This document shows positions 4,525 through 33,438 of a stretch of 64,000 nucleotides of DNA, piece after piece (position 1 is the first letter of the stretch; each line of letters opens with the position of its first letter). The notes beneath the pieces are model-generated. The model had not been told where the DNA came from. It did no database searches and saw only the letters and a list, made by a program, of their open reading frames with translations. The stretch is from Mizuhopecten yessoensis (lineage: Eukaryota), in the NCBI RefSeq assembly GCF_002113885.1, contig NW_018408899.1:457988-521987 (forward strand), in the 5' to 3' direction. The position numbers and the translations under genes are program-made.

Positions 4525-5370
4525 ATGGTAAAGACTGACAATGTTGAAGAAGTTGGAGTTAATATATGCGGGGTAGATAGATATCTCGATGGAATAGACA
4601 TCAACAACAGCTGCCGACGGGTGTATCTGAGGAGGATGGAATCTATTGAGGAATGTAAAAGGTCATCATCGACAGATGACGCAGAAAAACAGTCAACATC
4701 TATTGGAGCAGCCCTGGCACGACTTAGAACGGAGATGGTAAGAATTAACATCACAATAAACAAAATTGCGATTGATGTTGTTTTGTAATGTTGTTGACAG
4801 TAACCGAGGAAACAAGTGACGTAATTGATAAAAACATTTTTTTTTAAATCATAAAAGTACTAATGCAAAAGTTAAATACCAGATACATATACCAATGATT
4901 CAATACCAAAATATTGTTAAAAAACCTTTTTAATATACAGAACTATCAATATAACCTTGATTAACAACAGTGTCATTCCTTTATCTTTGAAGGTTGGACT
5001 AATGGATCAGGACGCCGGACTGATGCGACAGATGCTGATCCTTAACGAGAAAGTGGAGGAACTAAAGGCAAACAACATCTGTCAGATGAGCAAGGAATCC
5101 TTGGATAGTTATGACAGTTTATATCTGATGGAAGGACAGACAGCCAATCATCTTCTGGAGAGCAAAGATAGTCTCTACCACACGGACGAACAGTCGGACG
5201 ACTTATCATCTGATGAAGAAACATTTCAATGTTCTGATTCTGCTTACTCTGATTCAGACGAAGATAAATGTAATATTATCTCCCAATCACGTGATTGCCT
5301 GACTTCTCGAAAGGAGTCTGAGTCGTTGGATTCTGTTTTCGACAGTTTGCTTGAGTTTGACACTATGTGA
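4525..5370 (+). CDS. LURAP/FAM89-like coiled-coil adaptor, copy 1; exons 4525-4737 + 4993-5370, 196 aa
   Basis: Exon 1 ends ..LARLRTEM|gtaaga and exon 2 starts tttgaag|VGLMDQDAGLMRQMLILNEKVEELK. The phase-0 splice joins two track ORFs. The junction and protein are conserved in five other copies. The motif resembles the LURAP1/FAM89/FAM167 core (ALxxLRxEMxxLxxxDxxLxxQLxxLNExIExxK). Confidence 0.85.
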
Positions 5371-5531
5371 CACAGTGATCTGACATGGAATCTAACAGAA
5401 ACCGTTTTACACTGAAAATGGTATCACTTGTTCCCTGATGTCTCCATACAGAGCCCAAACAATGACGTCTATATGAAGACTTTCGGAACAGCGCAAAAAC
5501 AGAAGATGGTCTTAATGATTATTATTAAAAG

Positions 5532-5728
5532 GTAATTTATACATTCAAACTTAAATATATGCACAGTTGAATAAAACATATTTCAAATATAATTTTGAGA
5601 ACATGTAAATTACACCTATTCCTTAGAATTACATCTATTCTTTATTAACTAAATACTATTTTATATACTCCCTGTATATTGTATTATATAGTATTTTAAT
5701 AAGTGTTACACTATTTGTATATTTTCAG
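5532..5728 (+). other. Predicted 3' UTR intron of copy 1; candidate polyA signal AATAAA at 6067-6072
   Basis: aag|gtaatt ... attttcag|aa; positionally equivalent to the clearer 3' UTR introns of copies 3-5. Confidence 0.55.
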
Positions 5729-8700
5729 AAACAGATCAACAACTCGAATTGCAAACAGGCTCGTCGTGGATTGACACACACCATGTGATAGCGCAATTGA
5801 AAGCCTCTAACAGTGACTGAAAGTATGCATTAGAGGGTTCATTCTTACTGAACCAATGCATTTGTCATCGTGTGTTAAATGACAGGAGTGAACAATAACG
5901 GACGAACTCAAAACGATGATGATAATTAAACTGTGGTCTACAATGCAATTTTGCATTAATTATGAACAGTTGCTAAGAGGGATACTCTATCGTTATCCAT
6001 TAAAAGAAATCCATTGCGTTCGTTGTTTTGAAAACAATTGTTCCATACTATTGTATCATCTGATCAAATAAAATACTACACACAACATTCTACGTCGTAT
6101 TTTGGTTTGTATCAACAAATCATATTGGACTGGAAACCATTTGAATTACATTTTTAAACTAGATGCAACGGAATAAGCATTAGTGTAGGTAGTTAGAAAA
6201 TATACATAAACTCGCTTATTGTATAAACATAATAAACTGAACAATCATTATTTTTCCACATTGTATAGTTTATTTTGAATTCGTTCTAATTATCTGCCGA
6301 TTTCCAATATGCTCAAAAAATTTCTTGACTCAACGAAGGTAATTGTGTATGCAGAGAGAAATTCAAATATATAAACGTTTTTTTTTTCAAAATACAATTT
6401 TTGGGGAGATCTTGAATCTTGTTTGTAGCGTATGATCTTAAGAACTGATATAATTAACGTTCAGAAATTCCGGCCGTTTTAGCATCCTACAACATATAAG
6501 CTGCGTTTGAAAAGTATACTTAAATTTAAAATTAATACAAAGATTTTTTTTTTAACCGGATGAAATATTTGCTGACTGATGTGATACACCTTCGAACCCA
6601 TCTCTATATATAAAGTTTTAAGTTTAATTTGATTGAATTTTCGAATTTTGATCTAAACAAAAAATATTATTTGCTGACCAATATTTGACGGTATAAGGAA
6701 CTCCACATTTAATCAGTGGTACATGTACAAGAGAGGGTAACATAAAGAGTCCCTGTAATAACAATTACATTTTTTTGGTGGAAATATATCGACCGCAAAA
6801 AAGCGAAATATAGAAGCACGAGAAAGAGAAGCTTAAAAATATTCGTTTATTTAAATCAATTATTATGATTGCATTTTTTCTGACTATTGCATTGCTATAA
6901 TGGAAATTTAATAATCCGTTATATATGTAAAACAGTTGACTAACACCGACTTTTTGTTTCCGAGTTTCTATGATATTGAAACTGGATTGACATTGTCAAG
7001 GAAAGAAACAATATATATGTACAGGTTGGAAGTTGCAGGAACCTAAACTGGTCAACATGTAGCTAGAATATATATTGTACGCAACAATATCAATTGTTGC
7101 ATAATTCGTCGTTAAGATATATCTAAAAATCTCTCCTATATATCTAATGCCGTCACTTTTGGCATTAACTCTTTTTATTCAATTTATTGTCTTTTGATTT
7201 CGAATGATACAGATGAATGAATGAATTAATCAATCAATCTGTCGCCACTGCACTGATTATAAAAACGGTGGTTGCATTTGAAATGACAAACAACGATCCG
7301 AAGTCGCAGTTCTACAGCAAAATAAAACTACAATGATATTCAACTATAGATACAATAGATGTTCAATGATGCACTAATTTTGTCATCAAATCAGTTTCAT
7401 TTCAATAATATTTGCATTAAAGGAGTAAAAGCGAATAGTCATTAAGATATTGATGTTAACACGAAAATTGAAGGATAATAAAGCGTTATTTTGATAAAAC
7501 TGTAAAACCAATGCATGCACAAACGATGCGTCATAATAGAAGTTTAAATATTCAGTGGCATACAAAATTAGTGGTGTTACCGGTAGTATGTAAGATCGCA
7601 TTGTTTTCCGGATTGATTCGATTATTTTTCAATCGTTACTGATGTGTTTAGCTGCAATGTTATATTGACTAAGGAAACTCATCATTGCTGCTATAGATAA
7701 TTATTGCCATTGTCAGTTAGAATGAGCGATATTACATAAATTGTTTGTCGCGTCATGACTAATTGGAATGAATAAAACTATTATAAAACGTATATGTTTA
7801 ATACTTATTACTGCTTTATCCTTCTTTCAACATTGCCGTTGATTTGATTTCATTACATGATATGCAAGATTCAAGTGGTAAACGTCAAAATTCTTGAGTA
7901 ATTTATTTTGGATTTTTTTTTGTTCAACCGAATGGTATTATTTTTAAGATTCATTTTATCTTGCATTATTTTCTTCTTTTTGTAAAATGCAATGACGAAA
8001 ATAACCATTTCGAACCATATCCAATATACGTATAAATTGTCTTCTATAACCCCAACCTCCGCTCCGTTGGTGAACCCCTTCGATGTACATGCGGGGTCCC
8101 AAAGTATGTCTTTTTCATGAACGGTTTTTTGACCATAGTTGTTAAATATTCTCCATTGCTGGCGTTGCTTTAACTCAGGGGTAATCGGCATGGCATTATA
8201 AATAGCTCACGTGGTGTCGATTAAAGGTAATCATGTAAAAGACATTCTACCAGTAAAAATATATGTCGTTCTTAATGAACCAGACCTCCACACTACTGTT
8301 TTTAACACCAAGCCATTTGACGAGCTGTCAATATTGTTTACGGTCATTAGCATTCTATGTCGACCTCATCGATGGTTTTGTCTCCTACTTGGGTCGGCAT
8401 CGACATTGATAATATCCAACAGATATTAATTCCAGCAGGGACAGGACTAACAATTTTACATAATTATGATGTCGACAAGCCGGATACCTCCTGGATGATG
8501 ATCAATCCAATAAGCAGTGAGCTCCGAATGTGCAAAGGTTATCATTTTTTTATTGAGCATAAATTAGAGCATATATCATTAGACTTCATGTAATTATAAT
8601 AATATATAACCATTAAATAGATCTTGCAACAGTGCCACAAAACATGTGGTTCTTTCTCCTTAACTTATTATCAATGTATATATATATTTTTAAATACGTG

Positions 8701-9296
8701 TTACAAATCATAACTATTCCATTCCTTCGAAATAGAAGATACTACGGTTCAATCTATAGCTTAGCTTTATATTCTAACAACGGATGTAAAATGAAAGTTG
8801 GCCCAATTAATGATGGCAATAGTTTGCTCTTGATATATATCTCTAGTGTTATGTCGATTCTTTCTAGTATTTAAATCGTTCTGAACCGTCCTTTTATGCC
8901 GCTTTTAAAAAAAGAGTGAGGAATATAACTGCCAGAATAACAGAGAATAGTTTGCCGCGAATCCATTGTAATATATTGTCAGAAAACTGTCGTTTAGTTA
9001 GACAACGTTCGCTTGACATGCCATTTGATTGGTTAAATTATAGCATACGATTGTTAACACACGTATTATCTACACGCTTAAAACCACAAGGAAAATACTA
9101 AAAAACATTTTTCAATATACTTGTGTCACACAAAGAGGTTCAATTTTCTGGTGCAGCTTTTAATTCATCAGGATGGGAATTTAAAAAGCATTAAAATGAA
9201 TGTATCTCATTTTGCTATTTTTAATTCCTACAAAAAGAATAAAAGCATGAAAAATATGGAGCTAGTTCGAATAAAAGAAAATGTACCAATCTTTAA

Positions 9297-11474
9297 AGGG
9301 GCATCACGCTGAAGTAACTTTTTTTTTTGTCTTTTTTCCAAATACTACATAAACATATCAAGTGAGGCTCCTTATGGAAAATGCCGATCGGATTTGGCTG
9401 AAATAGATTCATAAAAATGATTAAATCTAAGATAATCATCGGTATTTCTACCTGTCTGACCAACGTTTTGTTCAGGGATTTCCCTCTACTAGCGCATGCG
9501 CATAGCACACCATTTCTTTGTAAACAAAATGACTGGCCGTGTGAAGTAAGCCAAAGAAAAGTGTTGTACCGTGTCAGCTACGAAGCGAATAGTTGCCAAA
9601 TGGTCAAAAGATAGCGCAAGGGGTACGTTACGGAATCATTATTGCCAGTGGGAAGTATTCAAAGCAGAAAATAACTGCCCTAGCAGTCAGTACGGTGCAT
9701 GTTTTCTTCCGGATAGCGGCCGGTTAAGCTGAAATAAAATCGACAGAAATGCTAGCGCTGTTTATGTTATGAATAAATATCTAAAACTATTAACCTCGCT
9801 AGTATCATTGTGTGAGTTTGAACACAGATGAACTTAGTTTAATATGTTAATGGGCATGTATCGGAGAGAGTTTACTTTGTGTTTTTTATAATTATACAGT
9901 GGTTTATGCAAACGAAAGGGATAAGTGACTGGTTAGTTTGATTTTGCCATGAGGCCCCCCAAGGGATAACTGCTGTGATGGCCACGGCGTATTCTGTTCT
10001 CTGATCCTCTGTCGGTGCTCGGGGTCAAATGAGATACGTGCGCTATTAGATTTACATAATTTATAATATTACCGGGATCAGTAAAATGGTATGATTTAAT
10101 TATATTGCTGAATTAAACGATTGTTTTTTGTTTTGACATGCAAGTTTTAAATTAGTACTAATATAATACCCGGCCTGCCCTGGCGCGACGACGCAATATA
10201 TAAAAAAAAAATCGCTCTTCGTCAGAAAGCTACGTTATCGCAGCTAGATTAAAAATGTCAAAATGACGGACCAGGATGAATAACTGAGGAAGGAGAACCT
10301 ACTTCTAGTAAATAGGATCGCATAACACTTTTTTTTTAAATCGTAATTTTTCAACAGTTCATGTTTTCATATGATGTTGACTTAGAATGTATGATCATGT
10401 AACAACCTTTTCTCTATAAAGAATAAATTTTCGACTTCAGATAGAATCGGAATACGTATTGAAAACAGGGGAAAAAATATTTGATTACGTTATAAAAATG
10501 GCGCGTGCTGCCGATAACTACGGCTTCTGTTTCGGACCAAAGGAACTGATTAAAGAAAAGTTGTCTCAGCATAAAAAGGTCCATTTAAAAGTATGCTTTA
10601 ATCTCTGTAAAGTATTGAAAAAATATAATTATCAAGTATCTCAACACGTTCCTTATTGACACATATTCTACATGTACACGTAGTGGTTTTGCCATACAGT
10701 TTATTGTGTGTGATGGTTAATATGACTTCCTAAATGTTAGCGTTTGGAGACAGTGAAAGTGGGAAAGAGAGTATACATAGATTTATATTCATGGTCTAGA
10801 AAAAAAATGGCCAAAGACATTGAGTTGTTTAATGTAATAAATAAATTCACAAACGTTTCCTTTTTATATTCGCGTGTAGTTTGTCATTGCATATATGCAC
10901 TTTATGTAAACATTTGAAAAGGGATATTCGTCTCGTGAATATTCCTTTTTACAGAAAGGTTTGTCCCATTGTTGAGGGAGTGTTTAGCCCCGTACCACCT
11001 GTACCGGTCACGGGAGAAGGCTGTGATAAATTGTAAAAACTTGTGCCCCATCCTTTGTTTAATTTTATTGGCAACAGATTTATGTTAAAAGCTAAATAAA
11101 TTTAAATTCTTAATATTGGCAAGTGTGCAATTAACTTCTGATGATGAATAATTACTGTTCAATAAGTTTGAATACGGAATTAGAAATCATATAACTTGGT
11201 TTCATAGTGCGGTAAGAAGTTGCAGTTGCCTGACGGCCCCTCTCCGAGGGCCCCTTTGTAAACCGTTTCATCTCGCTCGCACCACTTGTGTTTGCTGCCT
11301 AATCAGGTGACGTTATCGGCGCTATTTTTAGCCGGGCTTTCCCGAACAATTCAAGTGGTCAAACTGGACATTTGGAACGGACTATGAATATGGGGATAGC
11401 GAGGTAACATAAGTGGAAGTGCATACAATACATATATTCATTAAAAAAAAAACGCCTTTTCACGTGATGTCCCT
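9297..11474. mobile_element. Non-autonomous TIR DNA transposon with TTAA target duplication (Kolobok-like termini)
   Basis: TTAA|AGGGGCATCACG ... CGTGATGTCCCT|TTAA (11/12 inverted match, with T and A tracts inside each end); no transposase ORF. Confidence 0.6.
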
Positions 11475-11793
11475 TTAAATCGTATGCATCCATTTTACAC
11501 TCGAATATTTTATAATTGCCCCTCTATATATTTAATAATTCCCGGGAGGTTACTTTAATGAGCATCATTGATTCTATTGTGTGTGTTCCATGATTGCGTA
11601 AGAACAATATGAATCACCCCTTCCAAAGCCGGGGTTCCCCTACTGTGCTAAATACAGATGCATAGAATAATTCAGGCCAGGACAGATGAACACACAGAGA
11701 CCCGAAAAGTATCTATATATATATATATATAGGAAACAATCCTATTAACACAGAAACATCGTTAGGAACTAGATAAAGAAAGAACTATTCACC

Positions 11794-12470
11794 ATGGTTA
11801 AAGTCAAAGAGGATAAGATAAACCAGTGTGCTACACACAGATATTTGGATGCTAGTGATAAATAACAGCTGCCGACAAGCGTATCTTAGGAGAATAGAAT
11901 CTATCGAAGATTGTAAAAAGATCAAGATTGTCAGTTGTTGCTGATGTGCATACAACATTTGTCGGTGCAGCTCTGTTGCGTCTAAGAGAAGAAATGATAT
12001 GTTTATCATGTATTTACAATGATTAATTAAAGGAATCACATAAAACATTTTTGTCTTTTTGTATAACAAAAGATGAATTTTCCATTCAAATTACTATCCT
12101 CACGTCACTTCCTCATACAACATTTGTTTGTTAACTTGTAGGTGGAACTGATGGATCAAGACACCGGACTGATGCGACAAATGTTGATCCTGAATGAGAA
12201 GTGGAGGAGCTGAAGGCTAACAATCTCTATCAGATGAGCAAGGAATCCCTCGACAGCCAGGAAAGTCTGTATCAAGCGGACAGACAGACAGACAAAGACT
12301 GTCTGGAAAGCAGATATAGAATCTACACGGACGAACAGTCGGACGGAATATCGTCTGATGAAGAAACAATAACAAATTATAAATATGATTCTGCCTACTA
12401 TGACTCAGACGAAATTACGAGTAATGTCATCTACGGATCAAGTAAATACCTTTGTTTACGGGAAAAGTAA
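11794..12470 (+). pseudogene. LURAP/FAM89-like copy 2, pseudogene; exon relics 11794-11996 + 12142-12470
   Basis: Homologous peptides NNSCRQAYLRRIESIEDCKK, GAALLRLREEM, VELMDQDTGLMRQMLILNE and EELKANNLYQMSKESLDSQESLY lie in different frames (shifts near 11860, 11930-11950 and 12200). The intron donor is mutated to ATATGT. Confidence 0.85.
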
Positions 12471-15400: not shown

Positions 15401-15618
15401 ATATGTTTATCTAAAAAGCAGAGCCTACGATTGACATATACGTATCAGCTAATTTATATATGATATACTGATTGTAATTTCTTTTGTTGAATGCGACTTA
15501 TTCTGTTATGTGATAGTTTTAACTTTCTATAGTCTTTATTAACATTTGTGATTACTTCTGAAAACATTTTCTGCCGTTAGAAACTGTAAGCAAGTTTTGT
15601 CTCGCTTTTCGATGATAT

Positions 15619-15679
15619 GATCCATCCATCCATCCCATCTGCATCCGATTCCATCCCATCCACCCATCCATCCATCCAT
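15619..15679 (+). repeat. Imperfect (CCAT)n microsatellite
   Basis: tccatccatccatcccatc... directly visible. Confidence 0.8.
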
Positions 15680-15889
15680 ATTCAAAATCGTACATCAAAA
15701 CATTTACTATTTAGTCCATTTGTAAATTAGTCATTTAAATGTCATTTGCGTTTTTCCTTGGCCACATTTATATAAACATTGGTAAGGTAAGCCTTTTAGT
15801 ATATTTATCATGCCATATTTCCAATTGGTCACCTAATTAAGCATACGAATATGTACCACCTACAAGGCACTAAATGTCATTGTCTGAGA

Positions 15890-16246
15890 CACATGTAATT
15901 TAATAGCTCCATGGTGGTCTCATTCCCTCTCATTAACGTTCATGGTATAACTTATAATTACGTACCCAGTGTGGGAGAACATCAGGAGAGCCATTTGGCT
16001 TTTGTTTTGCTCACATAAATTATTGTTAGATCACATAGAGCGAAAATTATTTTCTTTTTTGTAAAAAACAATACTTCGAGTACTCCTGGAGTGAAGGTAT
16101 TCATAATTGTACCACACAGTGGATGTATAATACTACCCACGTGATACTTATTTAGTATAAATATGTCAATTCGCCTTGATTTAGACACTATAGCTAAACA
16201 AACTTACCATAACTGGAACTAGTAGGAAATATATATCACAGTCATT
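15890..16246 (+). promoter_or_regulatory. Conserved promoter and 5' UTR of copy 3 (CACGTG 16138-16143, TATAAATA 16156-16163)
   Basis: The block ATAGCTC..TGGTGGT..CATTCC ... TGTGGGAGA ... TATAAATATG ... ACTGGAACT is alignable with 20160-20496 and 24310-24645. Confidence 0.7.
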
Positions 16247-17034
16247 ATGGTTCACACAACAGAACTAGACGTTACCAGTGGTCCAGCAAATGTTGTTGAC
16301 AGATGTTTAGATGGAATAAACATCAATAACAGTTGTCGACAGGTGTACCTGCGGAGGATGGAATCCATCGAAGAATGTAAAAGAGCAACGAAGAAAACAG
16401 ATACTCACAAAACAACATCCACCATTGATGCCGCTCTAATGAAACTAAGAATCGAAATGGTAAGCATCATAATTTTGTACAATGTATTGGTGACATTATT
16501 GCTATTATTTCATTATCAATCTTTATTGACTGTTCGAATTATATATATATATTCGGAAAGTAATAGAACATATTGACTATACTTTTCTTTTGTTCTCAGG
16601 TGGATCTTATGGATCAAGATGTTGGACTGATGAGGCAGATGTTAATCCTAAACGAGAAAGTCGAGGAACTCAAGGCCAACAACATCTGTCAGATTAGCAA
16701 GGAATCCCTTGACAGTCAGGACAGTCTGTATGAAGAGGAAGGACAGACAAATAAATACCTCATGCAAAGCCAGGACAGCGTGTACCACTCAGACGAACAG
16801 ACAGACGAATCCCTGTTTGATAGCAAGGAAAGTCTCTACAACATGGAGAAAGAGACAAGCAAACTCTTAGGGGACAGTGCTGATAGTTTATACCAGACTG
16901 ACGGATTCTCATCTGATGAAGAGAACAGTGATGCATGTGATATCGAAAGGTCGGTGAGCACAACGGATTCGCAGCCTCACCTTTTATCATATGACTCTTT
17001 GTTTGAAAAGTTGCTTAACTTTGACAAAAAATGA
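16247..17034 (+). CDS. LURAP/FAM89-like copy 3; exons 16247-16459 + 16600-17034, 215 aa
   Basis: ..LMKLRIEM|gtaagc ... ttctcag|VDLMDQDVGLMRQ; frame open; homologous to the other copies. Confidence 0.88.
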
Positions 17035-17223
17035 AACAGACGACATCAATAGAAACACAGGTATCCCAGCTGTTTAAAACATAATCGAGTATATAGATAG
17101 GCGATAAAATGGTGATATTTGACAATATAGTCGATCCATTCCGACATCACCGATGAAAGAACAAGACGGGATCATTTATCATGGAATGGACGAAAAAGGA
17201 TCATCTAAGAATGAATGTAACAG

Positions 17224-17487
17224 GTAAGGATTTTTTTAAACATATGTTAACAACACATAAAATAATATTAAAAATAACTATAGTAATTATTTTTTCAATC
17301 ATCATAGTTTGAACAATATTTTACATATTTCAAAATTCCTCTTCCATATACGCAGTCAAAGTCTACGGAACTCTTTGCTTCAGACACAAATAAAACTACA
17401 TAGATGTGGAGTTTTAGCTTTTTATGACTCCTGAATATGGACTTATGGAAATGAAATAATGACCTTGAATTATTTTATATTTTTCAG
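17224..17487 (+). other. Predicted 3' UTR intron of copy 3; AATAAA at 17865-17870
   Basis: cag|gtaagg ... tttttcag|aa; flanking exonic sequence aligns with copies 4 and 5 while the intron interior is more diverged. Confidence 0.7.
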
Positions 17488-20159: not shown

Positions 20160-20496
20160 ATCGTATAGCTCTGTGGTGGTAACATTCCTTCTCTTTAACA
20201 TTCACGGCATAATTTAGAATGACGTATACGATGTGGGAGAGCACCAGGAGAGCAGTATGGCTTTTCTTTTGTTTCCAATCATTATTAGATCACATGGATC
20301 GAAAATTACTTTCTTTTTGTTTAAAAGCAATTATGATAGATCACCTGGAGCGAAAGTAGTGTTAAGTTTACCAGACAGTAAATATAACACGTGATGTTTT
20401 AGTATAAATATGCCAATCTTACTTGACTTAAACATTATAGTGAAATACACTTCTGTACTAAAGTACTGGAACTGGATTGAGATATACGAAAGCATC
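20160..20496 (+). promoter_or_regulatory. Conserved promoter and 5' UTR of copy 4 (CACGTG 20388-20393, TATAAATA 20403-20410)
   Basis: Alignable with the promoters of copies 3 and 5. Confidence 0.7.
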
Positions 20497-21509
20497 ATGG
20501 TTCACACGACAGAAGTAGACGTTACCGTATGTCAATCAAATGCTATCGACAGATGTCTAGATGGAATAGACATTAATAACAGTTGTCGACAGGTGTACCT
20601 GCGGAGGATGGAATCCATCGAAGAATGTAAAAGGTCAACGAAGACTGATACTAAAAAGGCAACATCAACCATAGATGCCGCTCTGATGAAACTAAGGACC
20701 GAAATGGTAAGCATTAATATTATGTTCCGTGTTTCGATGTCTTCTCTTTGTTTTTTGAAAATGAGAAAAATGTGTACTACCTACATGTTTGTTTATATAA
20801 ACTAGACTAACAAAAGACATCGTCATCGATTTTATAGACACCTCGTACACAATTTACACCTTTGTTTGTAATCGCTTCATTTGTCATTTGTCTGATGAAG
20901 GTGACACTGTACATATCGTACTAGTCATCGCAACGTCACATCGAAAATGTTATTGGTTGTGTAAAAAGAACTTCTCATAATCCGTACTTACCAACCTGAA
21001 GAAAATGTTAAAAAACAGATTAACAAAAGTTATAGAATGTGTTGCTAAAACTTGCTATTCGTTTTTCTTTTCAGGTGGATCTTATGGACCAGGATGCAGG
21101 ACTTATGCGACAAATGTTAATCCTGAATGAGAAAGTTGAAGAACTCAAGGCCAACAATATCTGTCAGATGAGCAAGGAATCTTTGGATAGCCGAGAAAGT
21201 CTGTACGAAGTTGACGAAAATGCACATAAACTCTTTACACAAAGCAAGGACAGTCTTTACTTCTCGGACGAGCAGACGGACGAATCCCTGTTTGACAGCA
21301 ATGAAAGTCTCTACAACATGAAGAAACAGACAAGCGAACTCGTAGGGAACAGCGTTGATAGCCTATATCAGTCTGATGAATTTTCATCTGATGAAGAGAA
21401 CGTTATTGGTGATATTAAAAAGTCTGTGAGGAAGACGGATTTATTGCCTGACATTGTATCATATGATTTTTTGTTTGAAAAATTGCTTGACTTTGACGAC
21501 AAAATATGA
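20497..21509 (+). CDS. LURAP/FAM89-like copy 4; exons 20497-20706 + 21075-21509, 214 aa
   Basis: ..LMKLRTEM|gtaagc ... ttttcag|VDLMDQDAGLMRQ; frame open. Confidence 0.88.
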
Positions 21510-21700
21510 CGACATGCTATGCAACTTAGGACACAGCTACCCCAGCTGTTATAATCCAATCCGATGACTCCATTATCGGTTTAACTGATAATTAAGGACA
21601 ACATAGACGATCCATGGCGATGTCAGCAATGAAATAACAAACAGGGGTTATTTCTCTTAGAGAGGACGAAAACAGGACAATGGTGGACTGAATGTAACAG

Positions 21701-21985
21701 GTAAGCAGTTTAAATCAGTTACCTTGAAATGAGGTATCTCTGGTAGATTTGTTTCGACATGGATAATATTAAGTTTATTCTTGTTGTTAATGTTTCAATT
21801 AAGGAAATTTGTATAAGTCATGTTTAATGCATTTCTGAATAACCTTTAATAAAAGCGTTCCTATTCTACAATGTTATACGTACAGCTACGTAGAAATGTA
21901 CTAAATTAAAAAGCTACACGTAACACTAATATTAGAATTTAGGACTGAAAATGATTAATGACAACTATTTACTTCTCTTTTTCAG
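21701..21985 (+). other. Predicted 3' UTR intron of copy 4; AATAAA at 22418-22423
   Basis: aatgtaacag|gtaagc ... ctttttcag|aa. Confidence 0.7.
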
Positions 21986-22754
21986 AATGCATGGAGATGG
22001 CATCACATGTCCGTGAATGAGTATCAGTGCTCTCTAGGGAATCGCCATGACGTTAAAAGGAACGAGATTCCCTGCAAAAGACGAGTTGGACGCAAAATAA
22101 GAACTAAAATCAAACGAATTCCTGAACTATTCGATTACTATTGGATGTTGTTTACGAGCTTTGTGCCTAGATCAGTCGGTTTTGTATGCAACTTCTCAAT
22201 ATTCCTAGAGCGTGTTTACGTGGAATTACGCTGATAAAGACGACTCAATGTATTCATGATGTTTAGACTGTTTACGGTTTATCGAATCACTGTTAGTATG
22301 AACTGCAATGGGATGCATATCACTTTCTATCAACTATGGAAGCAGAAACATTCTATTTCGTAATTTCTATTTTATCATATATTGTTAAATTAACGACATT
22401 TGTGTTTTTATGTTTATAATAAAATTGATTGATGTCAAAACATTGGCCTTATTTGTAATTAATAATAAACAGTTGGTGTTTAATTGAATGAGAATATAGT
22501 TGCAGCTTAACTTTAGGGATAACTATTTTGCAAATGCCGCTGGCATATTTCAATATTACAAAGGCACTGCAAAAGTTTCATTGGCTACATATTCAATAGA
22601 TAAACCACTAAAACAAAATCAAAAACAATCTTTTTAAATATGAATATAACCTATTTAAATATTACCAATGACTTAAGTGCTACAGAAGCAGATAATTCAG
22701 TATTGTTACACGAAGTCAGGGAGGATAAAACTAAGATATACACAAACAATTAAA

Positions 22755-22955
22755 TTCGCTGTAGGTGAAAACAGGAAAGAAAATAGGGGTATAGGAAAAA
22801 AAGAAATGATAACGATAAAGGGGAAATGGAAAGGAAAACGATAAACGAAAAAAACAGAAAAAGATAGCGAAGGGAACATGAAAAAAGGGAAAAGGAATGG
22901 GGCAAAGGTGAATACAGTAAATGATAGCGGTATAGGAAAAGGACAGGAAGGGATA
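22755..22955 (+). repeat. Purine-rich degenerate tandem/low-complexity tract
   Basis: Recurrent GAAAAAAGAAATGATA(A/G)CG..AGGG-like units; nearly all A/G. Confidence 0.55.
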
Positions 22956-24309
22956 TATTATGATAACTGAGGGAGCAAATACATTATCGTCCTTTCAAGG
23001 AGCCTGAAATATGACATAGAAGCAACATCTTTATTTTCGTAAGAGAATCACATAAGTTGTGTCTATAACAGAAGCTATGCAGAAAAAAACAGCGATATTT
23101 ATTATTTCTTCCAAAACTGCCTATAGTGAAAAAATTAAGCAGTTGGCAGAAGATATTATGATGTCATCAATTCTATCATAATATATTGAATTCATATACT
23201 TCTACAACACATATAAATGGTAATATTTATCAAGAATAATGTGTGACATATACGTCTCACGGAGTGCTAACGTGACAAAGAGAGATACTTTATTTCTGGT
23301 ATTTAACCAATTATACCTATGGGGTATACACAATTATCTAATTAGCCATTACAAACAATACACACCACACATAAGCATGCCCATTGTCGAACAGACTACG
23401 GCGAAGAAGAGTGTCAAGCTGGTTTCCTATAGCATAATGCTAAATTTGACTACAGTTTTGCTTTAGCAAGCAAAAAAGGATTTCTCTAGAAAACAAAATG
23501 ATTCGGAATAAGAATCATCACTCTGGTATTGTAATTACACGCTTTGTAAATAAAACTATTTGAAATTGTTTTGAGAACGTTTGCGGTCTACATACAGCTG
23601 AAAACAACTGACTAAACAGGTGTGGGCCAAGACGGCGAATTCAATAGACAAACGTTAAAATCGTATCGAGAAATTGCCCCTTAATGGAAGAAAGGAAGTT
23701 AGAATGGGGTTACAGAAAGGTTTCATTTGGTGTACCCTATTTTTTTTATTCTCTTGTCCTATTAGTAAGATGCAATTTTTATTTTTCAATGTCCATTTAT
23801 CCCCGCGCCTTTAGTTTGTCTTTCCACGATTGTACTTTTCTGATTTTACTACCATACCATATGCTCTTTTCTATCGGTCATTTCCACGCAGCCTGATCAA
23901 AACTCGTTCTGGAGCTATGATATCATTATTCATTTATCAAATTTCTTTTTATAGAAACAACAAACACTAATTTCCTTTAACTTATGAACACATTCAGAAA
24001 CCGGGTGCTTTCATATAACACGCTTTCTAACTAACCAAACAGAATTCTAAGAAGTTTCGATCGATCGTTCGTCCAAGCTATTATCAATCAGCCAATTAAT
24101 CAATTAGTTCCAATACATCATAGTAATCAGCAATTTATATCGAATTTTTAATTTGTCTATTCGTCAAGAAAAGCGCTTTGCATTCCCTGTTATGTGTGCA
24201 ATGTCAAACATTATTTATATATTTATTATGCCATATTTTCTAAATGGTATTGTACACTATCATAAGAAGATCAACCTACAACGCAACACATGTGATTATC
24301 TAAGTTACA

Positions 24310-24645
24310 GGGCATGTGATAGCTCTGTGGTGGTCTCATTCCCTCTCATTTGCATTCATGGCATAATTTGGAAGGCGTTCGCACTGTGGGAGAACATTCC
24401 GAGAACAATAGCACTATTCTTTAACTACAATCAATGTAAGATCACCTTTGGCGAAAATTACTTTCCTTTTGTTGAAAACAATATATGTTCAGGTCACCTG
24501 GAGCGAATATATTCTAATTTCACCATACAATGCGACACCGTGTGGTACCCATTTGGTATAAATATGTCTATCCGACTTGGTTTAACCACTAAAGCAAATC
24601 ACACTTACCAGAACTGGAACTAGATTGAGATATACGGCAGTCATC
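24310..24645 (+). promoter_or_regulatory. Conserved promoter and 5' UTR of copy 5 (TATAAATA 24557-24564)
   Basis: Alignable with the promoters of copies 3 and 4. Confidence 0.7.
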
Positions 24646-25528
24646 ATGGTTCACACAACAGAGCTGGATGCTACCATTGACAAATGTCTAGATGGAATAG
24701 ACATCAATAACAGTTGTCGACAGGTATACCTGCGGAGGATGGAATCCATCGAAGAGTGTAAAAGGTCAACGAAGAAAGAAGCTTCTCACAAAACAACATC
24801 CAGCATTGATGCTGCTCTGAGGAAACTAAGAATCGAAATGGTAAGCATCATCATTCTGTTTAACATTTGATATTATGATGTTCTATTTTGTTCCTACGAA
24901 TACTAGATAATCAGACAGAAGGTAACATAATTCATATTGACATAAAATAAAATGTTTTAAAGCATAGGTCCATGATGTAATTGAATATTTTATCCAAATA
25001 TTATTTAAACAGTTTATATTATACATATCTTCTTTGTCACTTAAGGTGAGTTTGATGGATCAGGATGCTGGTCTGATGCGACAGATGTTAATCCTAAACG
25101 AGAAAGTCGAGGAACTCAAGGCCAACAACATCTGTCAGATGAGCAAAGAATCCCTTGACAGCCAGGACAGTCTGTATGAAGAGGAAGGAGAGACAAATAA
25201 ATATCTCATGCAAAGCCAGGACAGCGTGTACCACTCCGACGAACAGACAGACGAATCCCTGTTTGACAGCAAAGAAAGCATTTTCAACATGGATAATCAA
25301 ACTAGCGAACTCTTTCGGCACACCGCTGATAGTCTGTACCAGACCGATGAATTCTCATCTGATGAAGAAAACATCGATATTTTCGATGTTGTAAAGTCTG
25401 GAAGTAAAACGAATCCACCGCCTTTTGTTAACAATAGATGCGTCAGTTGTCAAAAGAACTTAGTTGAGAAGTTTGTCTCATATGACACAATGTTTGAGAA
25501 ATTGCTTGATTTTGACGACAAGATATAA
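24646..25528 (+). CDS. LURAP/FAM89-like copy 5; exons 24646-24840 + 25046-25528, 225 aa
   Basis: ..LRKLRIEM|gtaagc ... cacttaag|VSLMDQDAGLMRQ; frame open. Confidence 0.87.
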
Positions 25529-25720
25529 AGACAGATTACGTTTATTAGGACAAACAGGTATCCCAGCTGTTCAAATCCAATCGGATTCCTAGATAAACCA
25601 CTCCAGTGTCGATAATGGACAATATTGACGATCTATCCGTCGATGAAGAACCGCCAAGGATACTTTATCCCGGAAAGGAAGAAAAGCAATAACTGCAAAT
25701 TCTACTGAGGAATGAAGCAG

Positions 25721-25988
25721 GTAAGTTTAGTATATATAAAACAATGACGATTTACACATGAAGTAGTAACAATTTAATTCTATTTGACATTGTTATCTCA
25801 AGTGAGTCGGATTTAGGTATGTTAAATGCATTTCCCAATAAAGCTGTCAATACATTTGCGCCTATCTTTAAAAAATATTTTAATAAGATATTGACTAGAT
25901 TGGTAAGTTTAACAATTCAACTTTGATATACACATTTTAAACCTAAAGGAAACAATAAATAAGAATCATTTACTTTTATATTTTTCAG
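25721..25988 (+). other. Predicted 3' UTR intron of copy 5; AATAAA at 26399-26404
   Basis: aatgaagcag|gtaagt ... tttttcag|aa. Confidence 0.7.
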
Positions 25989-26987
25989 AATATATGAAGT
26001 TGGTGTCATCGGCAATGACTGAGGGGTAGTGCCAACCATAGCACTCCAATTACTAGACTGACATCCTCTGTGAAAAAACAATGGGGTGGTCCTTTTTGGA
26101 ACTGACGAAGATAAAGACTCGAAATAAACGAACTGCTGGATCATACAGTTTCAACTTGACAGTGTTCGTGAACCCTTTCCAATTGAACTTCCAAATATAT
26201 TTGCGGAATTGTTACTCGCAGTCTTGCTGATATGGACGTTGTTCTGTGTTTGTAATATTTAGACAGTTTACAGTTAATGGATTCACGGCTGCTATGAATA
26301 CAACTTATACAATTTTTTGACCTCCCACCTTTTCCTTGTGGATATTATATTAACTAATACAATTTGTATGTGACATTTGAAATTTTATGCACTGAAATAA
26401 TAAAAAAAATAGTAATCAGTACATAGTTGCTCCGAGTTCCTATATATATATAGCTTTACTTTGAAATGGGCAATTATGCCATTCCGATGCTATTTTGTAC
26501 TATTAAAAATAGATATTTTGCGTTAAAAACGTCTGATCAATTACATGTTTAATAGGTAATCTTTCAATAAAACAACAAGAAAACTGTTCGTTTTAGAATG
26601 GATATATATTGTGATACAGTTGATGTATTTGCTGCGGCTAAAGTGATGCAAAAGATACTATAATTCAGTGTCCTTATAGGAAATAGGCATTATAAAGCAG
26701 AACTTCAGGGAAAGTTGATAAACGACTTACAGATAATCATTTAATAATATGAAGCATGTACTTAAACATTGCGGTAGATGATCATAAATTATAAAATAAA
26801 GATTTTCATATAAACTTTTAGAGATATTTAGGTACCAAATAGTTTAATAAAAACAAATCTGTTAAAATAATGGATAAACAATCAAACACTGATGACAATT
26901 GAAAGTTATTTTTCTAATTCCTTTTGGAAAAGGAAACTTAACAAAACCATGTAAAAAAAAGGATTAAATCAATCCTTTTTGGTTTCA

Positions 26988-27082
26988 TCTTCGCTAGCGA
27001 CGGGTTACGATCCGGTACGATCCGGTCTTCCTAGAGTAGGACGACCGGATCGTACCGGATCGTAACCCGTCGCTAGCGAAGA
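26988..27082. repeat. Perfect inverted repeat with 40-bp arms and a 15-nt spacer (palindromic mini-element)
   Basis: 26988-27027 is the exact reverse complement of 27043-27082; the spacer adds TCCTA/TAGGA pairing. Confidence 0.95.
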
Positions 27083-30000
27083 CGATTTTATTTGTTCTAA
27101 TTGATTTTGACGTTCAAAGGAAGTTATGTGTTCTAAGAGTGACACAAAGGAGACTATCAAAAGATTATAAAACAAGAAAATATGTGTTGTTGTAACGGAT
27201 GCTGCAGATATATTTTCGCTTTTTTAATAGAACCCTTTATTTTATCGAAAGACATTAGTCGGCTATGAATATAGTGCTATAGGACAAAGTGGGCAATATA
27301 ATTAACAAAATCAGCCCACGGAAATTTGTTTTGCAGTATGCGGCAAGTATTACAATAACACCAGTTATTGTGTATTGTTCATAATTAATATGTTAATACA
27401 ATACCAACATATGGGAAGGGGGGATAATCAGGAATGTGTGGCACACATTTGTTGAGCTAATTGGTTTGAAAAGAAAGAGAAATCCACGTGGGGCAAACTT
27501 GACATAGAAAGAAATATATTTTTGGTATGTTAACCAATTATCCCTATGGGGTAGACACAATTATCTAATTAGCTATTGGAGACAATATACACATCATTAC
27601 CATAATCAGTTGTCGTACAGACAACGCCGAGTATTAAGATAGACACATACAGTATATTTGGAAAATATTGATCTACATTTTGCCAAAGTAAGCAAAATTC
27701 TTGGGGGAATAAACTGGTTATGATTCTAAGTAAGAGAAAAAAGAACACTAACACCATAAATCTCTGCTTAAAATAGTTAACTATTTTATATAAATTTTCA
27801 ACATCGAATTTATTTCGCTTGTAAAACACACTTAATGCTATATTTATTTGCTAGATAGTATCTTCATGTGGTTCAAATCCTTTAGCATCGATTTCCTTAA
27901 TGTTTAAAACTTAAAATTTTATAGAGAAGTTCGCAATAAATAGAGAATAATGACTCAGAAAGACAATAAATGTATAGGGATAGTAATATTAGAGAATATT
28001 GTTTATACGTAATACTACATTATCACGTTTATTCTTTGTTATTTATTACGAAATAGAAGTTTTTCACTAGACGGCAGGTGAAATGAAAGATCTATTGAAT
28101 TCAATTTAGGAACTCTAGATATTTCTCTTTCCAAAAATTCGGGAAAAAAGAAATATCGGGACTGCATTACTAAAAATATTACCGATAAGCTTCCTAATAA
28201 CAAAATGTTAATTTAAATATAGTTGATTAGCGACTTCTAGTGATCGGTCAACTATGTGTATCAACACTGTACAACATCAAGATCAACATTTCTGATAACG
28301 CCTCGATACACACGTCAATAGCTCGTCTAGTTGTTTCATTATTTAAGGGTTGTTTATTACGGCGAATCGATTGAAAAGCACTTGTCAATCTTTCGTATCT
28401 TTTTATTTAGAGTCATTGTTCGCTGTTGGAGAGCTGACTTGATTGAGATCATTTGGCCTGATACCTGTTTGATATACTGGGCTATCGACATAAAATCCTA
28501 TACAACACGTCAAAAGGTCTACCCCACGTAGAACCACATATATGATAGACATTATGTAAAATACGCCCCTGAAAACCAATAAAATGATACATAGTAAGAG
28601 ACAACGTTATTTTTCATGGCTGATTCTTGAGATACAGAAAAAATATTTTACCGACTGCTGTCACGAGAATGTTTCCTTATAGTTAGATACAGTATTTTGG
28701 TGTATAATTGTATAAACGGGCTAATTGAGTATCGCATACTAAAATAGGTATATTGAACACTTTTCGGAAAAGGGAATTCACCTGAGTAAAATCAGATAAT
28801 AGATTAACTAACTTTAGGGGGAAACAATTGCGTAATAGTAAGATAAAGATATAAAAGAATATGGTCAGAAAAATTGTTTAGAGCGTATGATAAAATGGAG
28901 CTAGAGGAATACACGAAATACCGTTGGGCGTAGTATAGGAAAACAACACTGCGTATTATATAGGCTTGACTATAAACTGATCGGACCAACTGACAAAACA
29001 GAGATTGCAATGATATCAGAATGAAATGAATAAGAAGGTAGCTCCGTGTATCGTATATGTGTATATAAAATAAAAGCTCATATCTGAATTACGGATGTTC
29101 ACAGATAACATTTTTTGGTAGTATTAAGATATTTCTATTCAGAGCTCAGACTACATTAAACCGGCATATCGGAAAATTAAATCAAATTGCCTTTACGCCA
29201 TTTCCGATCAACACGGACTCTGACATTAATCTCTGGTGAGAACTAATTCGCTGAACAAAAGCAATAGAAAAGCACACCTTAATTCGATTCTGTACGTGAA
29301 GAACAGCTGATAATTTTAAAGTAAGTATACATGAAATCATTAACAATTAAAGTAAACACACATTAAATGTGTCTTGTAAAGTTTTCCAAATAGTATACGA
29401 AAAAGCAGGTGGAAGAAGAGAAAAAATTGAATCAATCTGTTAAAATTCTCAAATTTGCTTCATCCGAAGTACACAAGTCTACCCTGAGAAGTAGGGTATC
29501 ACGGCAGCAAAAACATAACAAACAAACAACGACAAAACAAACCGACATTCTGCGATCAAAACTTCAGAGCTAAATAGATCAACAAATAAACAAACAGATA
29601 AAATACAATTCAGAAATCCTTGCTGTTCCTCTGATTATTCCCTTTTGCACAATTAAACGGAAAGAAAAGACAAACGCACACATTGATAAGTTCTATCAAA
29701 GACAGTTTGCTTCAAGTCTACAAAATTCTAAAATATATGACAACTTCATTCCCCTAGCATGGTAAGATACTTTGTTGACAAGAGACCAGACATGAAATGT
29801 ACAGAATGCCGATAGTTTATGTGTGTTAGTCTGGAATACCCTTGTAATACAATATAACTGTAAGTGTTGTTGACCATATTTTAACAGAGTGACCTTTACC
29901 TTGCTACACACCCAGGGGATGTTATCAAAATGACACAATACCAATACTTATCATACGGAACGAACCAAGTGACAAACGCCTGTTAGTTCATTGTTTCTGG

Positions 30001-32381
30001 TTGACGTGTCGATAATCTACCATATTCAATACATTGATCGCCTTGTTTTATTGCGTGATGGCTAACATGCTCTAAATCTTCACCAGGTTGTGGTATTTGA
30101 ATTATAATATTGCTATCCTGCGTTATTAAAAACAATACAAACTAATGAACACAAAGAAAATATCTGAATGAAACAGTTATAAATTTCTCTTTCAATCATT
30201 TCGAAAAGATTTGAGATTACAAATTTTGTGACGTAAGATTTGTGTCAGATTTTAACCGATCAAAGCATTCAATCTCAGTCAGTTCTATGCATTCGCTCAC
30301 AAACATTTATATAAATAATATAGTTTATCTGTTACCATTAATTAAGCGTGCACGAATTAGCATGCATTTTCTACTAAAGTTCATAGATCACGTATCACCA
30401 AGAGTAATGCAGTTATAAAACACGTTAGCTGCTTCATGTGAAATGAAATGGTTAATTCATAATTTCATAGCATGTCGTATCATAAATATTTTCAAATCAT
30501 AACATTTTGCGTTTTATATCAAAACAAAGTTACACTTCTTTCGTTGTCAACATGGGTAAATAATCTAAAAGTTATACCCATAATTTTGTTTTGCATCACA
30601 CCTTTTCTATAGAATATTATATTTCAAATTTTAATTTTGTGTCATAAAAAGACAGTGGGTATATGATAAAGCGGCTAGTGCCGTATCAAAACTACTGTTT
30701 GAAGATTTTTGCCATTTAGCCTTAAATCCTTTTTTTCACACATCTTTTACATACACTTGCTGTCGCTGAAATATCGTGATAGTGTGTACATGTTTTTTCT
30801 TCTTACTTTAGAGTGAATCTATTAGAAGCGATGATATACTCTATAATTAGCCCAAGTCAATTGTGTATCTTAAAGTTATGAATGGTTATCCAATATAGGT
30901 AACTGAATAGGATAATTGATATGATATTGATCATATCATTTATGTTTTAATAAAATTAAGAACTCGACCAGAATTTATATTCCAAATAACTATATTACTG
31001 TACTAGTATCATATGAAATATGAATATACTTATTTGAGCAAAAACTGTTACAGCGTTATATTTAACCTGATTTCAAGTGATCTTGATCCGACATTGCCCG
31101 AACTTAGACACTCTTAACGCCTAATCCTAGCATTAGATCTTGACCGTATACCCCCTGTGTATACCAAGGCACGTAATGATAGAACATGCTCATGGGTCTT
31201 CCTTCCCCTGAACTTCCCGGGGTATGTGATCGATATGGTCTGTTTTAACACTGATCGTTGGAGATACACAGATATATAGCTGTCAGTTGATTGTTAGTCA
31301 TTGTAAGAGTGTCAATAAAGGAGAGATTTAACAGGCTGATACCTACACGGTAGAGTTATTTCACCGATAAATAGATAGATTCCATGTCAAGACGGGCACG
31401 CTAACAATTAGGTGGTTTGACGAATATTTCAGAAATTCGGTTGACCGGATGGGGCGTCATATTCTATGTCTAAGCAATGACGTTTCAATGCAATGGGACA
31501 TTAAAGCGGCTATTGGCTTGCTACATCCTCTGTAAACGCCATATGTCAATAGCGAAGAGATAAAATCCAATAAATCAATTAGTCAAGGTGTTTTCGCACA
31601 CGGTTAAAATTAAACCAAACACAAACATGTATCATAAGGTTTATACACATTTTATGTAATGAAATCCTAAAATTTGCTAAAATTCACAGACAAAATCAAT
31701 CAGAGGTGGTGATGACAATCAGTAAAACCTGATTATCAAAGCTAAACTGTACAAATGAATATGACTCTCATTTAACACATCGTGTTCATTTGGTACCATA
31801 ATGTAAAAGGGTAATTAATTGAAAACATTACCCCCGACGACCCATATTCTACACCTCCGAAACAAATAATATAAAAAAAGATGATTTCAGGGTCAACTTG
31901 TTACTTGCAAACAAGTAGATTCTGCAGTTCACTTCATGAACTATATACAAGATACAAGAATCTTCATTCAACGTCGCATACAGGTAAACAAGGAACATAA
32001 GCTCCTGAGAGCTATTATTGCGACAAACATAATAATTCAACTATATATAAAGTATCATCATTAAAAATAACATTAGGCGAAGTAAGGTCGTCTCAAAATA
32101 TACAAATAGAATTAATCAATTATATAATGGTACACTAGATTGTGCCAACTCAAAGTCGTAGACAATTGCCAGTTATCTATACTGCACTATATTTTCAGAT
32201 TGTTTTCAAGTAACGTTGCCAATGCATGCTACTCTATTGTTTTAAAGTCGACCTTGCAGTTCATACCAGGGGGCATATTCCCCCAGGATGCGCTCCCTGT
32301 AGACACCACATTGATGAGTTAGATGTAATCAGATTAATTAAATCTAAAGGACGAGCTGCACCCGATCCAAGGTGGTAACAT

Positions 32382-32479
32382 AGACGTCATCGCATATCTC
32401 ACTGCCCATCGCCCAGGGTTTAAGTCAATACAACATTTAGACCAATCAGAGATGTTCTTGTGACTCAGTGGTATATAAG
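32382..32479 (+). promoter_or_regulatory. Core promoter of copy 6: CRE-like AGACGTCA 32382-32389, CCAAT 32442-32446, AP-1 TGACTCA 32461-32467, TATATAAG 32472-32479
   Basis: Four textbook motifs clustered within 100 nt, about 70 nt upstream of ATG 32548. Confidence 0.7.
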
Positions 32480-32547
32480 GCCAGAAAGAGGTACGAGGCG
32501 TCATAACGACTTTCCTGTCTCGGGAACAACTGAACAAACCATATAAA

Positions 32548-33438
32548 ATGGCGCTGACGACACGACAGACCGTGGATTGTACCGATGCCTATACGGCCTC
32601 TATAGATTTGTCCAACTCTTGTCGGGAGTTTTACTTCAGCAGACAGAGGTCAACTGAAGAATTCAAGGACAATGTCTGCAGAGACAGCCACTCGACAAAG
32701 CCTAAATCATTCATGGATGATGCTATGGCGACGCTAAGAAAAGAAATGGTAAGCTTTTAAAAAAAATCTTTTCTCATTATATGCCTAATGCTACATAATT
32801 ACATTTGCTTTACTAAAATATATTTTGCGAATACAAAAGATAAAAACATCCTTTATTTAAATAATTGAATAGCTGTAAGTTATACTTTTTCCGGTTATGG
32901 TTTTGAAACATTTCCCCCCGTCATTTTTCATCAGCCTCCGCCTGGAAACATATATACTTACCAAGTACCTATTTTTGTGTTGCAGGCGAACCTGATGGAC
33001 CAGGACTTGAATCTGATGAAGCAGCTTCTGACCATGAACGACACCATTGAAGAGATCAAATTCCAGCGTTTCCATGGTGGCAGCAAAAACTTGTCAACGA
33101 GTTCCTGTGACGTCTCTGATTCTGACTACGACCTCCGGTCATTGCCATCCGTATCTTCTCTTCCCTCCATGGGTTCCGTTCCGTCTATGTCTTCACTTGT
33201 ATCAATGTCTTCGTTGCCTTCCGTTTTCGATGAAAATGACTACCAGTGCGTCTCTGACGAGGAGTTGGAAGACGAATATCTGTGTTCCGAACTGATTGAG
33301 GAAAATGTGAATACGAACATTGTGTCTGGCAAATGGGAATCATTCAGTTCCAGAAGAGACACCCACGGATCTATTGACTCTGGATTTGGTGACTCACAAA
33401 GTTCAGACGAAAGCACGGACAGTGATTCAGAATGCTAG
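32548..33438 (+). CDS. Divergent LURAP/FAM89-like copy 6; exons 32548-32748 + 32986-33438, 217 aa; AATAAA at 33684-33689
   Basis: ..DDAMATLRKEM|gtaagc ... gttgcag|ANLMDQDLNLMKQLLTMNDTIEEIK; same phase-0 intron; N-terminal DLSNSCREFYFSRQRSTEEFK homologous to the other copies. Confidence 0.88.

Follow-up and report, generated by a model that had tools for sequence, protein, structure and literature searches.

Which protein family is encoded by the small two-exon genes that follow one another on a contig of the scallop Mizuhopecten yessoensis, and what might these proteins do? The stretch analyzed here (the window) comprises 64,000 nucleotides of contig NW_018408899.1, positions 457,988 to 521,987, and contains six related loci, numbered copies 1 to 6 in the order of their positions. 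A sequence-only reading had described them as a tandem expansion of leucine-rich adaptors and had interpreted the cluster as a pulse-response module. Our analysis identifies the array as a Pectinidae-specific tandem expansion of a fast-diverged LURAP subfamily, whose genes are transcribed, spliced and selectively kept. The best explanation of their sequence features, to which we assign a probability of roughly 0.6, is that the encoded proteins are putative MRCK/actomyosin adaptors, or competitors of such adaptors, with a changed partner.

Structure of the array

Translation of the window confirmed that all six ATG codons are present on the + strand. In five copies (copy 2 being the exception) the first exon, of 65-71 codons, ends with LRxEM followed by GTAAG, and all six downstream exons open with xLMDQD after a polypyrimidine-AG stretch, the intron lying in phase 0. 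The exon joins of the five corresponding RefSeq models (Table 1) are those predicted; in the RefSeq protein of copy 1, for example, the two exons are joined between LRTEM and VGLMDQD. RefSeq labels the products of copies 1, 3, 4, 5 and 6 "uncharacterized proteins". The window-encoded proteins are 99-100% identical to the M. yessoensis RefSeq proteins, and public RefSeq proteins were used for all full-length protein analyses.

In comparison with its paralogues, copy 2 has lost 2 bp and gained 1 bp in exon 1, where the donor GT is also missing, and has lost 1 bp in exon 2. The C-terminal motif has disappeared as well, and no protein model was returned for this locus; copy 2 is a pseudogene. The earlier description of six same-strand, two-exon paralogues with a shared phase-0 intron was thus accurate as to the ATG codons and the GT..AG introns after LRxEM, and has to be amended for copy 2 and for copy 6, which belongs to a separate orthogroup. 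The array proper is composed of four intact genes plus the pseudogene, and a conserved member of the family (copy 6) lies next to it.

Searches of the host genome covered a 988-Mb assembly of 82,659 contigs, in which the window is C5572:457988-521987. Three further LURAP-like genes with the same intron position were found: an unnamed gene at C5572:574 kb, LOC110466649 at C5572:632 kb and LOC110448697 on contig C2066. Altogether, the family has at least eight intact members in this genome, of which seven lie inside ~170 kb.

Family assignment

The Pfam gathering threshold is 25 bits for both candidate families, LURAP (PF14854; LURAP1/LURAP1L/FAM89) and FAM167 (PF11652). A scan of single exons gave only sub-threshold matches, since the helix is interrupted by the intron: FAM167 was matched by exon 2 of copies 1, 3, 4 and 5 with 17-21 bits, and LURAP by copy 6 with 18.5 bits. 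As a full RefSeq protein, copy 6 scored 35.1 bits for LURAP, above the cut-off, and its orthologues scored 31-33 bits. The LURAP scores of copies 1, 3, 4 and 5 (18.7-22.5 bits) and of five paralogues from Argopecten irradians (13-23 bits) are under the cut-off, as are the FAM167 scores of the array copies and the Argopecten paralogues (16.5-20.7 bits). The C-terminal region of the FAM167 profile (positions ~60-85) is not matched by the array copies, whose matches stop at 39-57 of 85.

The array proteins are homologous to copy 6 according to profile-profile comparison: hhalign of the array alignment against the alignment of the copy-6 group gave a probability of 98.9% (E 3.4e-17, 90 columns), and BLASTP between the two groups found 44% identity over 85 residues (E 1e-18). 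When the array alignment was searched exhaustively with HMMER against 1.84 billion representatives, 89 proteins reached E <= 0.001. The array type accounts for only two of them (313-326 bits), the best of the others has 89 bits, and the profile reaches LURAP-positive mollusc proteins down to E 1e-20. When 55 of the matches were aligned together with copies 1 and 6, 56 of these 57 proteins matched LURAP at E <= 0.001 and none matched FAM167. Named matches come from Mytilus, Pinctada, Haliotis and Dreissena, some of them under the label "leucine rich adaptor protein 1-like"; other named mollusc matches are from Mya, Sinanodonta, Ruditapes, Babylonia, Biomphalaria, Aplysia, Elysia, Lymnaea, Bulinus, Solemya and Tegillarca, and two are annelid proteins (Owenia and Capitella). 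A search of the M. yessoensis genome with the LURAP profile returned nothing at E <= 0.01, which is uninformative on copy number because the intron splits the domain. Of the LURAP1/FAM89/FAM167-like core proposed earlier, the LURAP component is confirmed, by the Pfam match of copy 6 and by the comparisons linking copies 1-5 to it, while FAM167 is a distant relative only. Our literature search found no paper naming these loci or connecting the family with molluscs.

Genuine FAM167 genes are located elsewhere in the genome (Table 1). In all four, the helix exon has the same Pfam starting column as exon 2 has in the LURAP-like genes. The upstream exon was found at one locus only (L013), where it ends with R-K-E-L followed by GT; the resulting layout (R-x-E-x, GT intron, six residues, D) is that of the LURAP-like genes. 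At the level of exon layout, this points to a putatively shared ancient intron in the LURAP and FAM167 families and supports their probable common ancestry.

Evolution of the array

Maximum-likelihood analysis of 37 proteins united the four intact array copies with the five paralogues of Argopecten in one clade with 100/100 support, on a stem of 2.57 changes per column. Two types can be distinguished within it. The long type consists of copies 3, 4 and 5 and one Argopecten gene (98/99), and the short type of four Argopecten genes (100/99), to which copy 1 is nearest by identity. Copy 6 clusters in a separate clade with single orthologues of Pecten, Ylistrum and Argopecten (83-87% identical); it is a conserved gene with one-to-one orthologues in three other scallop genera and lies outside the young expansion. 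The tree indicates that at least two array lineages are older than the Mizuhopecten/Argopecten split and that a different one was duplicated in each species; together with the death of at least one copy, this is a birth-and-death pattern. The proposal of a lineage-specific birth-and-death cluster is therefore well founded, with a scallop-only clade, species-specific duplications and one pseudogene.

The gene order is shared between genera. In Argopecten, three array copies lie 5′ of the copy-6 orthologue on the same strand, and in Pecten maximus an unannotated array-type copy was detected ~7 kb upstream of the copy-6 orthologue, in the same order and on one strand. The matches to the tail of this Pecten copy are distributed over three reading frames, which indicates either a pseudogene or an error of the assembly.

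Synonymous divergence (dS) among copies 3-5 is 0.5-0.8 and is saturated in comparisons with copy 1. The ratio of nonsynonymous to synonymous divergence (dN/dS) among copies 3-5 lies at 0.18-0.24 overall; for the helix core, encoded by the first 35 codons of exon 2, it is 0.01-0.15. The array duplicates are old and under purifying selection.

Exon 2 of copies 3 and 5 (window positions 16609-16927 and 25055-25373) is 89% identical over 319 nt, and exon 1 and the upstream regions of these two genes are only ~75% identical. This pattern may reflect gene conversion between non-adjacent copies.

Transcription and splicing

Public sequencing runs were examined for transcripts of the array; the RNA nature of these runs is a guess by the search tool, so they are referred to as likely-RNA runs. 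Fourteen such runs from five studies contain 31-42% of the words sampled from a 5.4-kb stretch over copies 4 and 5. Contigs of two likely-RNA runs, from two studies, include GT..AG joints at the predicted junctions of copy 4 (20706 to 21075) and copy 5 (24840 to 25046). A third GT..AG joint in these contigs removes positions 21701-21985, a 285-nt intron in the 3′ untranslated region (3′UTR) of copy 4 that starts 191 nt past the stop codon. A 3′UTR intron had been proposed as a feature of the cluster; the contig joint demonstrates it for copy 4 only. An unspliced contig spanning this intron is also present. Within the intron there are two AATAAA signals, at 21848 and 21905, and a short contig stops at 21858, so copy 4 may have an intronic polyadenylation isoform that competes with splicing.

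Contig depth on the exons was 13-40 in two runs, in contrast to exon depths of 0-1x in two raw RNA runs, and expression is therefore not ubiquitous. The start codon of the RefSeq model of copy 4 (ATG 20410) abuts the TATA box at 20403-20409 and lies 5′ of the earliest contig (~20450). For this reason the start is more likely at 20497, and the 28-residue N-terminal extension of LOC110466661 is probably an annotation artefact.

A stretch of ~180 nt within intron 1 of copy 4 (20843-21023) had a contig depth of 830-930 in two runs, as against 13-40 on the exons, with many loose ends leading into unrelated sequence and a joint on the opposite strand at 20889. The stretch is probably a repeat element that is dispersed and transcribed; a search for an inverted repeat within it found none.

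Predicted structure and conserved motifs

The structure was predicted with AlphaFold2 from the 57-sequence alignment (residue numbers are those of copy 1). Two helices are predicted, at residues 19-50 and 59-109, with a block-mean predicted local distance difference test score of 79-94; the remainder is disordered (~50), in agreement with the earlier characterization of the proteins as small and mostly disordered. Helix 1 contains the motif NxCRxxY, in which N, C, R and Y are each conserved in at least 90% of the 57 relatives, and which lies upstream of the Pfam-matched stretches (these start at residues 47-54 in copy 6 and its orthologues). It is common to mollusc and annelid relatives, so the extra conserved motifs noted earlier are not particular to the cluster.

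Helix 2 is an unbroken a/d heptad series (L64, L67, M71, L74, D78, L81, M85, L88, V92, L95 in copy 1). R68-x-E70 is encoded just 5′ of the intron, and the Asp D78 occupies a core heptad position. Across the 57 relatives this D is invariant and the L and E of LRxEM are nearly so.

The tails contain 23-26% Asp+Glu and 19-26% Ser+Thr. Those of the array proteins carry 4-6 [DE]S[LVIA][YF] motifs, as compared with one DSGF in copy 6, and most non-array relatives have a single DSG-hydrophobic motif 6-25 residues from the end. All array proteins have [FY][ED]KLL[DN]FD 2-3 residues short of the C-terminus, ending with FDTM, FDKK or FDDKI; this motif was found near the C-terminus of no non-array relative among those aligned. 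Many relatives have a hydrophobic last residue, and this PDZ-ligand-like end is absent from the array clade; copy 6 ends with DSEC, which is ambiguous. The LLxFD end fits the clathrin-box pattern L[IVLMF]x[IVLMF][DE] and overlaps an LC3-interaction-like core; both patterns are permissive, and we take them as leads only.

Promoter regions

A TATA box is located 76-94 nt upstream of the ATG in each copy (89 nt in copy 1), and an RCGTG/E-box ~15 nt further upstream in copies 1, 3 and 4; copies 5 and 6 lack the latter. Scanning of the promoters for elements of the heat-shock, NF-kB, AP-1, cAMP-response (CRE), serum-response (SRE), STAT and hypoxia types revealed nothing consistent beyond the TATA boxes and this E-box. 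No heat-shock triplet, CRE or SRE was found upstream of the copies, and the sole NF-kB-like site lies upstream of the pseudogene, copy 2. Copies 3-5 share 75-78% identity over the ~450 nt that precede them, which is above the neutral expectation at their dS. Similarity between the 3′UTRs of the copies stops ~60-70 nt past the stop codon. The TATA boxes and the 3′UTR intron are compatible with regulated expression without establishing it.

Comparison with known adaptors

The scallop proteins resemble LURAP1 (LRAP35a) and LURAP1L, which are likewise small adaptors with a leucine-repeat helix of the LRxEM...D...L pattern. Unlike these, the array proteins end with short extensions after a conserved LLxFD, the scallop, mollusc and annelid proteins have the additional N-terminal NxCRxxY helix, and the scallop genes occur in a tandem expansion and not at low copy number. 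FAM89B (LRAP25) and FAM89A belong to the same Pfam/InterPro family as LURAP, and LRAP25 connects MRCK to LIMK1; the likeness of the array proteins to this pair is one of family membership, and no sign of the LIMK1 link was seen here. FAM167A and FAM167B (DIORA1 and DIORA2) share with the array the position of the phase-0 intron (by Pfam register in the four scallop genes), and DIORA1 is likewise disordered, its one helix binding the kinase-inhibitory motif of MRCK. The array copies differ from them in the absence of the FAM167 C-terminal part, which in DIORA1 binds the C1-PH and CNH modules.

The leucine repeats of vertebrate LURAP1 bind MRCK, and its class I PDZ-binding C-terminus serves MYO18A and Dishevelled (PMC5677176). 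LRAP25 binds the kinase-inhibitory motif of MRCK via the equivalent helix (cited in PMC12519202). In DIORA1 the helical segment that corresponds in alignment to the LURAP1 and LRAP25 binding motifs contacts the MRCK motif, and DIORA1 with R124A/E126A/D134A no longer binds it; LURAP1, LRAP25 and DIORA1 are the only known binders of the MRCK regulatory coiled coil (PMC12519202). Scallop R68, E70 and D78 have the same 0/+2/+10 spacing as the essential R124, E126 and D134 of DIORA1, and an MRCK-type KELK domain was found in the M. yessoensis genome, on contig C5595 near 1.85 Mb.

Possible function of the array proteins

Helix 2 would pair with the coiled-coil kinase-inhibitory motif of scallop MRCK, as the helices of vertebrate LURAP1, LRAP25 and DIORA1 do, and the tail would then select what reaches the kinase or stays away from it. 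In the course of this remodelling, an ancestral single DSG-hydrophobic motif would have been multiplied to the 4-6 copies seen in the array tails, and the C-terminus swapped to [FY][ED]KLL[DN]FD. As the helix has been kept and the tail remodelled, the paralogues are most likely MRCK/actomyosin adaptors or competitors that have been redirected to a different partner. Several points weigh against this explanation. The full-length array proteins remain under the LURAP cut-off and do not have the class I PDZ-binding C-terminus used by vertebrate LURAP1; the stem of the array clade is very long, so the partner may have changed; and the two raw RNA runs looked at show very little expression. The match to the R/E/D hot spot was made by the residue numbers given in PMC12519202. 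MRCK binding itself we infer from the R-x-E...D spacing and the KELK domain, which are indirect evidence.

The long stem and the remodelled tail would also suit proteins that have left MRCK and modulate another pathway, e.g. NF-kB (as LURAP1, LURAP1L and FAM167A may do), perhaps in an immune-type expansion of scallops. Immune gene families of bivalves typically expand in tandem, and paper titles, as far as these go, connect LURAP1L and FAM167A with NF-kB signalling. However, the helix core is the most constrained part of the proteins, the R/E/D triad associated with binding to the kinase-inhibitory motif of MRCK has been retained, and no immune-type domain or promoter element was found, so that we regard a complete change of partner as possible, if unlikely. 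A wider scheme would combine a kept MRCK helix with a swapped output module: the paralogues would tie MRCK to, or hold it from, the membrane-traffic/autophagy machinery, their action would be regulated and short-lived, given the TATA promoters and the 3′UTR intron, and LURAP and FAM167, with the phase-0 intron and the R-x-E...D triad in common, would represent one ancient superfamily of proteins whose helices bind MRCK. We consider this combination quite improbable. The pulse-response module of the sequence-only reading, i.e. an immediate-early-type system with a stress- or infection-responsive promoter, a 3′UTR intron limiting the mRNA through nonsense-mediated decay, and tail phosphorylation relaying or ending the signal, could draw on the TATA box of every copy, the conserved upstream regions of copies 3-5, the spliced and unspliced contigs of the copy 4 3′UTR, the strong variation of expression between runs, and the Ser/Thr- and Asp/Glu-rich tails. 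Yet the "inducible promoters" amount to TATA boxes and an RCGTG/E-box that is missing in two of the copies, no heat-shock triplet, CRE, SRE or NF-kB site precedes any intact copy, the 3′UTR intron was demonstrated in one copy only, and similarity between the 3′UTRs ends soon after the stop codon. The "phospho-relay tail" has no sequence correlate beyond an acidic, serine-rich composition with repeated DS-hydrophobic-Y/F motifs. We found no evidence behind such a module and judge it very unlikely.

Two simpler views of the locus were rejected. Membership of the copies in the FAM167 (DIORA) family, hinted at by the exon-2 scores and by the shared intron register, is hardly tenable: every match is below 25 bits, none of the 57 relatives matches FAM167 at the E-value at which 56 match LURAP, and true FAM167 genes (44-94 bits) reside elsewhere in the same genome. 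That the copies are functionless, decaying duplicates would agree with the broken copy 2 and with the three reading frames of the Pecten tail, but it is contradicted for copies 1, 3, 4 and 5, whose frames are intact despite dS of 0.5-2 and whose dN/dS is ~0.2; genes of the array are spliced in the assembled contigs and the motifs are kept between genera, and we give this view almost no credence.

Features of the locus

Coordinates of the copies and of related loci are summarized in Table 1. The window has ~33% G+C and contains no N and no tRNA gene. Two minisatellites are located downstream of the array. The first (49843-53199) is a 3.4-kb pyrimidine-rich tract with a unit of 57-59 nt (~57 copies, 71-88% matches), which accounts for the extreme GC and AT skew of this region. 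The second (54597-55882) has a 30-nt unit, also readable with a period of 217 nt, and ~42 copies.

Table 1. Positions of the LURAP-like copies (numbered from the first nucleotide of the window) and of related loci outside it
Feature	Position	Strand	Details
Copy 1, LOC110466581, 196 aa, short type	4525..5370	+	exon 1 4525-4737; intron 4738-4992; exon 2 4993-5370 including stop
Copy 2, short-type pseudogene	11794..12470	+	exon-1 remnant 11794-~12005; exon-2 remnant from 12142
Copy 3, LOC110466617, 215 aa, long type	15795..17034	+	promoter block 15795-16246; exon 1 16247-16459; exon 2 16600-17034
Copy 4, LOC110466661, long type	20165..22470	+	upstream block 20165-20496; TATA 20403-20409; exon 1 20497-20706; intron 20707-21074; exon 2 21075-21509
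Copy 4 transcript		+	contigs from ~20450; 3′UTR intron 21701-21985; 3′ end near 22400-22470
Copy 5, LOC110466601, 225 aa, long type	24214..25528	+	upstream block 24214-24645; exon 1 24646-24840; intron 24841-25045; exon 2 25046-25528
Copy 6, LOC110466652, 217 aa	32548..33438	+	exon 1 32548-32748; exon 2 32986-33438; conserved LURAP-family gene, outside the young expansion
Pecten maximus array-type two-exon copy, no called gene	L017:2884-3729 (LR736841.1, ~7 kb upstream of LOC117325790)		tail matches in three reading frames
Genuine FAM167 genes L012-L015	C5563:271.9 kb, C5563:167.7 kb, C2776:561.6 kb, C5522:584.7 kb		44-94 bits

Significance

The array clade is a divergent, scallop-only variant of the known LURAP family; the family-level interpretation of the locus holds and its interpretation as a module fails. 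This finding will not greatly surprise a specialist; scallop biology gains a further tandem family restricted to its lineage, the members of which have so far been annotated as "uncharacterized protein". Paralogues that combine a constrained, putatively MRCK-binding helix with a rebuilt tail offer a ready comparison for the question of how the differing tails of LURAP1, LRAP25 and DIORA1 give rise to opposite effects on cell motility (PMC12519202).

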